Numbered from the stretch's first letter, positions 7,539 to 10,500 are shown. The stretch is DNA of 64,000 nucleotides from Dimorphilus gyrociliatus (GCA_904063045.1 CAJFCJ010000033.1:62001-126000); one strand, 5' to 3'. Notes: generated by a model from the letters alone, not told the origin. Numbers and translations are program-made.

Positions 7539-10500
7539 TTAAGTGTACCAAGGTTTTCTTCTATGCCATCGAATCGTATATCCAGAATCAATTCGAATTT
7601 TTATTGAAGCAGCTTCAGCAGCTCTTACTGTATCTCTTACGGATTGCATTAAATTCTGAGCGTTTCCAACAAGCATCTCAGTCGCTTCTTGATCCTCTTC
7701 GGAGCCTTTTAGAAAGAAAAGGAATTATAAATTACTACTTATAAAACACAAAGTAATAACACTAAGACAACATGAAAAGCCATTAAAAAATTTACAATAT
7801 ATAGGGCTAGGTTATTGAAAGAATAACATAAAGAAAACGAATAAAGATATAAACATTTTAATAAATTAATATTTTCTAGCTTTTTCTAATAAGCTACCTA
7901 ATACATTATTAGAATTTATGTTATTTTCATTACATTTCTTTAGCTTTTACTTACTTGATTCTGTTTTTATATATTTTGTGTATTGATTAAGGGAGAAGAT
8001 AAAAAAAAGAAAAAAAAACAAATCAATGAATTAGTAAAGAAAGAAAAAAAATCTTAGTTTGTTTTTTTAAAAAAAAAAATAGAAAAAAAACCATTCAGAT
8101 TTTCACACTGATCATCATCGTCGTCGTTAAAATTATCATGCTGAATTGTTTCGTAAAAAACTAAATAACTATAATTCTCTAAGTGCTTTTTTTTGTAATC
8201 TAGTATAATATTTGATTATAAAAGTTTTTAGTTAATTTCAACTACGTAAAAACCTTTTATTATTGATTTGTTATTATTACAAATTAATTTTATGTTACTT
8301 CTATTGATACATGTATATTTACCGCTAGCTAATTCGTTATCATCCGGTATTGGTACAGTTTCTGTTGTACATTTAAATATTTGCGATAAAACAAATAGAA
8401 TTGTTATCGGGAAGAAACAAACACAAATGGAAAGAGAATAGATTATCGTAAAAATCTTATTCCTTTCGTTTTTATAATTGGGTAACGGTGGGATTTTTAT
8501 CTTTTTTTCAACATCTTCTTCATACTTTTATAAGATAAATAGAAAAGTATAAAATTCTACCTTGTGCGCCCAGCATTGTCGCCTTGACCGTGGAAAGGAT
8601 TTTTAATTGGGTTCCAATTGTTGGAATTCTCTCACAAACTTGTAAAAGATTCTATACGAAAAAAAAATACGATTTAGTCTTATTACCCTCTCTGTATATA
8701 CTTTTCCTTGTAAACACAAAAATAAGCATCAACTATTATCTTAAAAAACAAACCATTCTCATGCGTTTATCAGTGCAATCCATGGCCAATTTCTTGGCTA
8801 ATTTTGTTACTCTCTCGGACGCTTCGGCAATTGCTTTTGCAGTTGCAATAAGCTCTTTTTTAGAGCTACTTTCTCCTCTATAATTTGAATGAAAATTGTC
8901 ATATCAAAATTGAATAATGTGAAGGTGAAAGGTTAAAATATGGATTAAATAATCAACTAACCTAACCAGCTGGCTAAGATTAGCCATTAAAATAGCCATT
9001 TCTTTTGCAGCTGCGATAATATCGTTATCCCTGCTGGACCATTGCTTAACATCCATATGTAGGGCATGTGCCGCTTGCTAAAGAAACGAAATTATATAGA
9101 TATACTTAGGAAAATTATCTCAGATATTCAACTCACCATAATTGGTTGATTTTCGTTTGGCATCTCCTCCGGGAAACTCGGCTCATCATCTTCAGTATCG
9201 GATGGTGGGGGTGGTCTCGGTGGAGCCGAATCCGAGGGTAGGGGAGGTCTTGGGGGAGCCGATTCGTCATCAATATGCATTCTGTCCAAATCAATTTCAG
9301 GTTCCCAAGTAGGTTTAGGCATTCCTCTTTGAACTGCTAAGCCAACGTTGTCTATCGCGTTGATGAGCTATCAATGAATAAATAGAGGAAAATATCAACA
9401 GGATATTAGCAATTGTTACAAAAGGTATAAAGACAATAACAACATAAAAGTAACAAAATTAATACCTTGTTGTTGTTGTTCCTCCAGTCCTGAACAGCCC
9501 TTTGATCTTTGGTGTTATTAACAACTTTTTTCGCACTATGAACCATCGGTGGTAAAGCTGATAATAAAGTACATTGTACAAGTATGAAATATACAATATA
9601 TATATATATATATATTTAATAAATTAACGTACATTCCTCCAATTTTCTGACGCATTGCCCAACATCGTTAACCAATTGGGGATCCTCGGAATTCTCCACT
9701 TCTTGCTCGGCAACCTAAACAAAACAGCAATTTTTAGTTGTTTTCTCAATGATAATTGATGCTTCAATAGAAAAATTAACAAAAAGGGGAGAAAGAAGAG
9801 AGATAAAAAAAAAGAAAAGTATGTGTTTTACCTCCATAACTCTTTTAGATCTTTTACCAATACAGAATGTGTTTGCAACAACACTTCCAGGATCTGATTT
9901 TTCAATCGCTTTCTCAGTTAATACCGTTTCTTTTTGAATAGCTCGTTCTATTTAATAAGAAACAATCGTTTAACAATAATTATAATACGACCTAAGGAAT
10001 GTTTCTCTTACTGTTTGCTTTAATAAACGCTCCAGTATCAACAACTCCATCTACAAGATTTTTTAACCTATTTACATCGTCTTCCCAATGACTTTTTATC
10101 ATATTGAAATGCTCATTTGCAGATTCATTATTTGGATTTGCGTGAACCATTCGGGCTGCGTGTATTACTTCGGGTGCTAGATTTTTTATCTAGAAATTCA
10201 AGGATAAAGATGATCGATTTAGAAACGTTTGAAAAATAAATAAAAATTTAGTATCATACGCCTATAGCTTTGTTATTTAGTTCTTGAATTAAAGCCTTAT
10301 TGTGCTGTGACGCTCCAAAGGCGGCAACTGTAGCCGCTTGTGTTATTCTTCTCGCATGTTCTTCAAAATTTATTTCTGCATTTTTCATCACTTCATTACG
10401 ACCTGGTGTATCTGTATAGGATGATAGAGGAAGAGGGTAGACAGAGAGAGAAAAAAGAAAAGAATTATAAATAAACATTTACAAATATATAAAAGAAATT

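Follow-up and report, generated by a model that had tools for sequence, protein, structure and literature searches.

The last intron of the vinculin gene of Dimorphilus gyrociliatus very probably holds two alternative exons, one of 39 nt (8361-8323) and one of 6 nt (7960-7955), each of which lengthens the loop between helices H4 and H5 of the vinculin tail in frame. The gene lies on the minus strand of the window, which is the whole stretch of 64,000 nt analysed here (GCA_904063045.1, CAJFCJ010000033.1:62001-126000), and positions are counted from its first letter. An original prediction had proposed that the same intron hides an exon encoding a transmembrane helix and mutually exclusive with the H4 exon. 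As far as assembled RNA contigs allow, an integral-membrane vinculin is refuted. The cassette and the microexon are instead an ordinary, deeply conserved alternative-splicing module.

Vinculin Tail Exons and the Last Intron

Reading of the sequence places the 3′ end of the vinculin gene in three minus-strand exons, 8877-8754, 8651-8561 and 7705-7539. The second of these (8651-8561, minus strand, 91 nt) is constitutive, encodes helix H4 and ends in MLGAQ plus one base, as seen from its translation and from the joints in RNA contigs, which connect it upstream by 8754>8651 and downstream from 8561 to 7705, to 8361 or to the microexon. The last coding exon (7705-7539, minus strand) encodes helix H5 and the C-terminal arm (...RKPWYT) and carries the stop codon at 7541-7539. 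A search with the last-exon peptide returned 208 vinculin fragments with identity up to 98% and precomputed PF01044 assignments, and the 15-residue peptide of the H4 exon is identical in many vinculins. By similarity, the flanking exons are assigned to the vinculin tail domain (Pfam PF01044). The intron position between MLGAQ and G(S/T)EEDQ is common to dozens of invertebrate vinculin fragments.

The last intron (8560-7706, minus strand) measures 855 nt, and the upstream vinculin introns confirmed by RNA joints measure 102, 84 and 59 nt. The genome of D. gyrociliatus is about 78 Mb in about 350 scaffolds with a median intron of 66 bp, and its intron retention varies with intron size, splicing being adapted to short introns (PMC7854359). 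The tail part of this compact vinculin gene has one long intron, whose length is explained by the two alternative exons inside it.

Splice Joints in RNA Contigs

Four of nine public runs found were compared with positions 7300-9300. These were a coral metatranscriptome (X1), two marine metatranscriptomes (X2 and X8) and a run of unrecorded kind (X9), which was treated as RNA since the neighbouring introns are absent from it and the exons are joined. The RNA data are assembled contigs, from which rare variants are dropped and which carry no tissue, stage, reliable level or proof of absence; contig depth was left out of the ranking of isoforms. Read on the minus strand, every skipped part begins with GT and ends with AG. 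The canonical joint 8561>7705 was found in X2 and X9 and, by way of a loose end, in X1.

The 39-nt cassette (8361-8323, minus strand, phase 1 to 1) is bordered by acag and gtaaat and is spliced on both sides in RNA. The joint 8561>8361, which skips 199 nt, was found in X1 and X9. The joint 8323>7705 was found in X1 contig 4 only, with 16-17 exact letters on the short side; this contig of 433 nt runs through four upstream exons, then 8361-8323, and then 16 letters matching 7704-7689. The cassette keeps the frame and adds 13 residues to the H4-H5 loop, after MLGAQ and before GSEEDQ. A 39-nt cassette at this place had been the last alternative listed in the original prediction, and it is this form, including the predicted donor at 8323, that the junction contigs bear out.

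The cassette leaves an intron of 199 nt before it (8560-8362, minus strand) and a sub-intron of 617 nt after it (8322-7706, minus strand), which X1 splices out and X9 contig 20 keeps. That contig is unbroken over 7695-8361 and is then joined to 8561, and it bears on acceptor 8361 only; in X9 the upstream sub-intron is removed while the downstream one is kept, and the apparent level of the cassette form is low. The same contig can be read to mean that acceptor 8361 is mainly the start of an alternative 3′ end, in which the intron is kept, 31 codons are added (...VVEIN) up to the stop codon 8233-8231, and the product lacks H5 and the C-terminal arm. The frame is indeed open to 8231, and the size-dependent retention and short-intron-adapted splicing of D. 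gyrociliatus (PMC7854359) agree with a kept intron, but such an alternative 3′ end is unlikely to be the main use of the acceptor. The fully spliced cassette form is present in X1, the length of the read-through is unconserved in relatives (2 to 75 codons), and the bundle could not form in a tail without H5. A retained intron of 617 nt also fits slow splicing where the median intron is 66 nt.

The 6-nt microexon AATCAA (7960-7955, minus strand) was recognized from RNA contigs and sequence together and has acag before it and the consensus donor gtaagt after it. It appears in X9 as six letters (TTGATT on the plus strand) between 7705 and 8561; X8 has TTGATTCTTG at 7705, a loose end of ten letters that runs on into the H4 exon. 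Its inclusion replaces Gly by Glu-Ser-Ser, so that the protein reads GAQ-ESS-SEEDQ, and the frame is kept.

Two further signals within the intron were considered and rejected. A depth peak at 8037-8103, reaching about 10,000 and present in all four runs, was dismissed as a vinculin signal; its source is short contigs 90-95% alike on the T/A-rich run 8054-8094. Structured RNA as the cause of the intron length or of the X9 coverage was also set aside, as Rfam gave two sub-threshold matches only (E 0.13 and 0.34), which fall well short of the gathering scores and were taken as chance.

The 202-nt Stop-Free Segment

The segment on which the original prediction was built (8524-8323, minus strand, 202 nt) is as it was described. 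It has ...cttataaaag before it and gtaaat after it, encodes 67 residues without a stop, starts in phase 0 and leaves one spare base at its end, as the H4 exon 8651-8561 does, and its AG lies 36 nt past the donor of that exon. The full open frame around the segment comprises 99 codons (8527-8231). When the intron was resampled, open runs of at least 67 codons arose in about 10% of cases, runs of at least 99 codons in about 0.5%, and any AG...GT segment of phase 0 to 1 and at least 150 nt in about 7%. The open frame is unusual for a single intron and unremarkable when many introns are inspected. The segment occurs once in the 77.9-Mb genome (349 contigs), which rules out a repeat or transposon origin, and Pfam gave no match for either the 67- or the 99-residue frame.

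According to the original prediction, the whole segment would replace the H4 exon by way of the joints 8754>8524 and 8323>7705 and yield a vinculin with a hydrophobic membrane anchor. The open frame, the AG and GT borders and the matching phase are real, and 99 codons without a stop are a rare length in this intron, but this form is almost certainly not made. Positions 8372-8505 have zero depth in X1, X2, X8 and X9, although the flanking exons in X9 stand at a word depth near 1000. The joint 8754>8524 was not seen in any contig, and exon 8877-8754 joins 8651 in every one of them (X1, X2, X9), and the contigs give no support to the proposed mutual exclusivity with the H4 exon. Joining through introns of 43 or 46 nt, offered as another route, found no support either. 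Because 8372-8505 is uncovered and 8754 joins 8651 only, the part encoding the hydrophobic helix is removed as intron. The membrane-anchor form would, moreover, remove H4 from the five-helix bundle and, as noted, has no Pfam match.

The RNA contigs and the sequence together make the segment exonic in its last 39 nt only, and the remaining 163 nt of the open frame (8524-8362) are intron, lying within the 199-nt intron before the cassette. The same intron holds the tract 8455-8375, which is 52% T and 69% pyrimidine and lies directly 5′ of the proven acceptor 8361, for which it would be the polypyrimidine region. Such a pyrimidine-rich tract contains few stop codons, and its in-frame Phe, Leu, Ile, Val, Cys and Ser codons imitate a transmembrane helix. 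The appearance of a transmembrane helix arises because the T-rich tract before the cassette acceptor is read as codons.

Related introns give a similar picture. The frame 5′ of the cassette in many of the relatives yields short hydrophobic strings (e.g., FISTI, CLFLIGCYT and IVLFVLT), and in 10 of 13 loci it stops after 5, 6, 7, 7, 9, 12, 19, 19, 19 and 31 codons; in the other three it extends for 46, 57 and 112 codons. The upstream open frame, whose conservation had been proposed as a check of the hidden exon, is thus not conserved; most orthologous introns close it by stops, an observation that the original prediction had named as counting against its exon. For calls of hidden exons in AT-rich introns, a caution follows, namely that the pyrimidine tract of a splice site can mimic coding sequence.

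Related Exons in Other Protostomes

Inserts at the same place in other vinculins were collected by a full HMMER search followed by extraction of the loop. Inserts of 13 residues were obtained from Tachypleus tridentatus isoform X7 (XP_076353431.1; APVPTPDGSEIIC) and from Trichinella nativa (KRZ51242.1; APMSVREGSEISP), and the spliced Logan contig L003 reads GAQ-APIITPDGSQIIC-GTEEDQ. The insert of these protostomes occupies the same site as that of the window, after MLGAQ or MLGSQ and before G-S/T-E/D-ED, and has the same length (13 residues, 39 nt) and phase (1 to 1). It follows the motif E/A-P-V/I-P-x-P-D-G-x-E-I-x-C, to which the window version may be related; in the latter, however, position 8 is not Gly and the last residue is Ser instead of Cys. 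Exon 8361-8323 and the exon behind the 13-residue insert in some predicted protein records of other protostomes are one and the same, and its kind is in this sense already represented in databases. A limited literature search found no paper describing an invertebrate vinculin tail cassette. For Caenorhabditis elegans DEB-1, an isoform b of 369 residues and an isoform f of 358 residues, 11 residues apart, have been reported (PMC6527391).

Inserts of other lengths were also encountered. Those of Schistosoma haematobium (DDSWFEAPLQSELDC, 15 residues) and Helicoverpa armigera (VGMPDYK, 7 residues) come from the records P0173 and P0124 and lie at the same loop position. A GC-rich transcript-like contig (L065:955-1113) carries an insert of 17 residues, GDEPAAWERREDGIVTS, at the position of the H4-H5 loop. 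The vertebrate H4-H5 loop is two residues longer than the invertebrate default.

At the locus of the mussel Mytilus trossulus (L004), the intron at the corresponding position measures 5.5 kb and contains three small exons or candidates. The first is an apparently unannotated candidate cassette of 39 nt between AG and GT, encoding EPVPAPDGGEISC (L004:11229-11267). The second is an annotated 9-nt microexon (L004:12675-12683), with which the gene model reads GAQ-EQEC-SEEDQ, and the third is a candidate microexon, AATCCA (L004:13284-13289). A set of 80 metagenome loci was scanned with a simple 12-position score. Eight loci have 39-nt exons of the types EPIPCPDGSEIVC, EPIPTPDGSEIVC or DPIPSPDGSEIVC, scoring 10-11 of 12, and six have weaker exons (EMIPQMDMGEILG, DTIPRRIDAE(V/I)IG and EFIPRFEDGEIRG) scoring 7-8. 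Antisense controls reached at most 5 of 12, as against 7-12 for the cassette matches. No other member of the set diverges as far as the window cassette, which fits 6 of 12 positions of a consensus built from the others, a score for which narrower residue sets were used than for the antisense control; its own score of 12 in the scan is circular, since the scoring sets were defined in part from the window. Contigs of two further relatives were uninformative, one (L002) containing 96 nt of intron only and the other (L005, L006) 1.2 kb 5′ of the last exon without an H4 exon or cassette. Judged from these comparisons, the 39-nt cassette recurs in worms, mussels and horseshoe crabs, and it is probably present in insects.

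The microexon has counterparts as well. An identical 6-nt microexon, flanked by caag and gttcgg, is present in L008, a transcript-like contig from another species, and AATCCA microexons occur in four loci (L004, L019, L026 and L028), the three besides L004 having the borders acag and gtaagt. Wherever both exons are present, the order is cassette then microexon. By sequence, the 6-nt microexon recurs in other worm-like contigs and in a mussel. It fits the general class of animal microexons (3-27 nt), with which it shares its size, its place in a surface loop, a strong donor and near-identical sequence across species. Many animal microexons are neural and dependent on Srrm/eMIC, and a UGC close 5′ of the acceptor is typical of Srrm4/eMIC-dependent microexons. 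TGC is present 15-30 nt 5′ of the microexon acceptor in L004, L019, L026 and L028, whereas none occurs in the last 40 nt before 7960 in the window.

The recurrence of both exons bears on the possibility that the cassette and the microexon are functionless splicing noise of an unusually long intron. Noise would agree with evidence drawn from contigs only, with the low apparent level in X9 and with the divergent cassette sequence in the window. It is nevertheless very unlikely, as length, phase, position and order recur in the mussel, in annelid-like contigs and probably in insect-like contigs, the Tachypleus isoform and the nematode protein carry a 13-residue insert at this very point, the AATCAA microexon is identical in the transcript-like contig of another species, and GCAUG is enriched 3′ of the cassette. 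The preferred reading remains that of two alternative exons.

GCAUG Motifs Downstream of the Cassette

A GCAUG (Rbfox-type) motif lies at 8141-8137 on the minus strand of the window, 182 nt 3′ of the cassette donor. This motif, at +182, is the only GCAUG counted downstream of the window cassette and has the form AGCAUG, not UGCAUG. At least one GCATG was found within 300 nt 3′ of the cassette donor in all 13 loci. The total in these loci was 22, as against 2.4 expected from shuffles, several of the loci being close relatives of one another; the lineages that count as separate number at least seven, namely the window, Mytilus, the EPIPCPDG group, L020, L047, L050 and L066/L073. In many loci one GCATG falls within +13 to +23 and another near +110. 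UGCAUG 3′ of a cassette promotes its inclusion via Rbfox proteins, typically in muscle and neurons. The downstream enrichment of GCAUG suggests Rbfox-type control, in which a factor of this type bound at the downstream motif would control inclusion of the cassette.

Effect on the Vinculin Tail and Relation to Known Isoforms

Both alternative forms lengthen the H4-H5 loop of the actin-binding vinculin tail. An AlphaFold model of the tail of Tachypleus isoform X7 (residues 850-1034) was built with 20 aligned tails. The helices have pLDDT values of 86-96, with the end of H4 at 115 and the start of H5 at 131 in the model, and the insert of 13 residues is modelled with low confidence (pLDDT 58-67) as a loop that leaves H4 and H5 intact. 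The model predicts the insert to be a flexible loop extension that replaces no helix. The acidic, proline-rich 13-residue insert would likewise stay a flexible loop, and it would tune the actin-binding tail rather than anchor the tail in a membrane.

The closest known system is metavinculin, the muscle isoform of vertebrates, in which an alternative cassette exon likewise alters the actin-binding vinculin tail. Metavinculin has 68 residues between residues 915 and 916, which take the place of the extended coil and of helix H1 (PMC7827843). The inserts described here are of 13 or 2 residues in the H4-H5 loop near the C-terminus and have no sequence relation to that of metavinculin. Identity with metavinculin was rejected, the insert being between H4 and H5 and not at residues 915/916. 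Alpha-catenin is a paralogue of vinculin, and in alpha-N-catenin II an insert is said to lie close to where the last helix of the homologous five-helix bundle begins; a literature search for the alpha-catenin insert found no source.

Taken more broadly, protostomes may have a vinculin tail isoform system of their own, consisting of an ancient, Rbfox-controlled 13-residue cassette and a microexon of 2-3 residues, as a functional counterpart of metavinculin with a separate origin at a different site. We hold this wider reading tentatively. If true, such a system would adjust, in muscle or neurons, how the tail binds or bundles actin, and the downstream GCAUG signature points to tissue-specific control of the cassette. 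Isoforms of the vinculin tail are discussed almost only for vertebrate metavinculin, and a conserved invertebrate isoform of the H4-H5 loop would offer mechanobiology a simple and testable variant.
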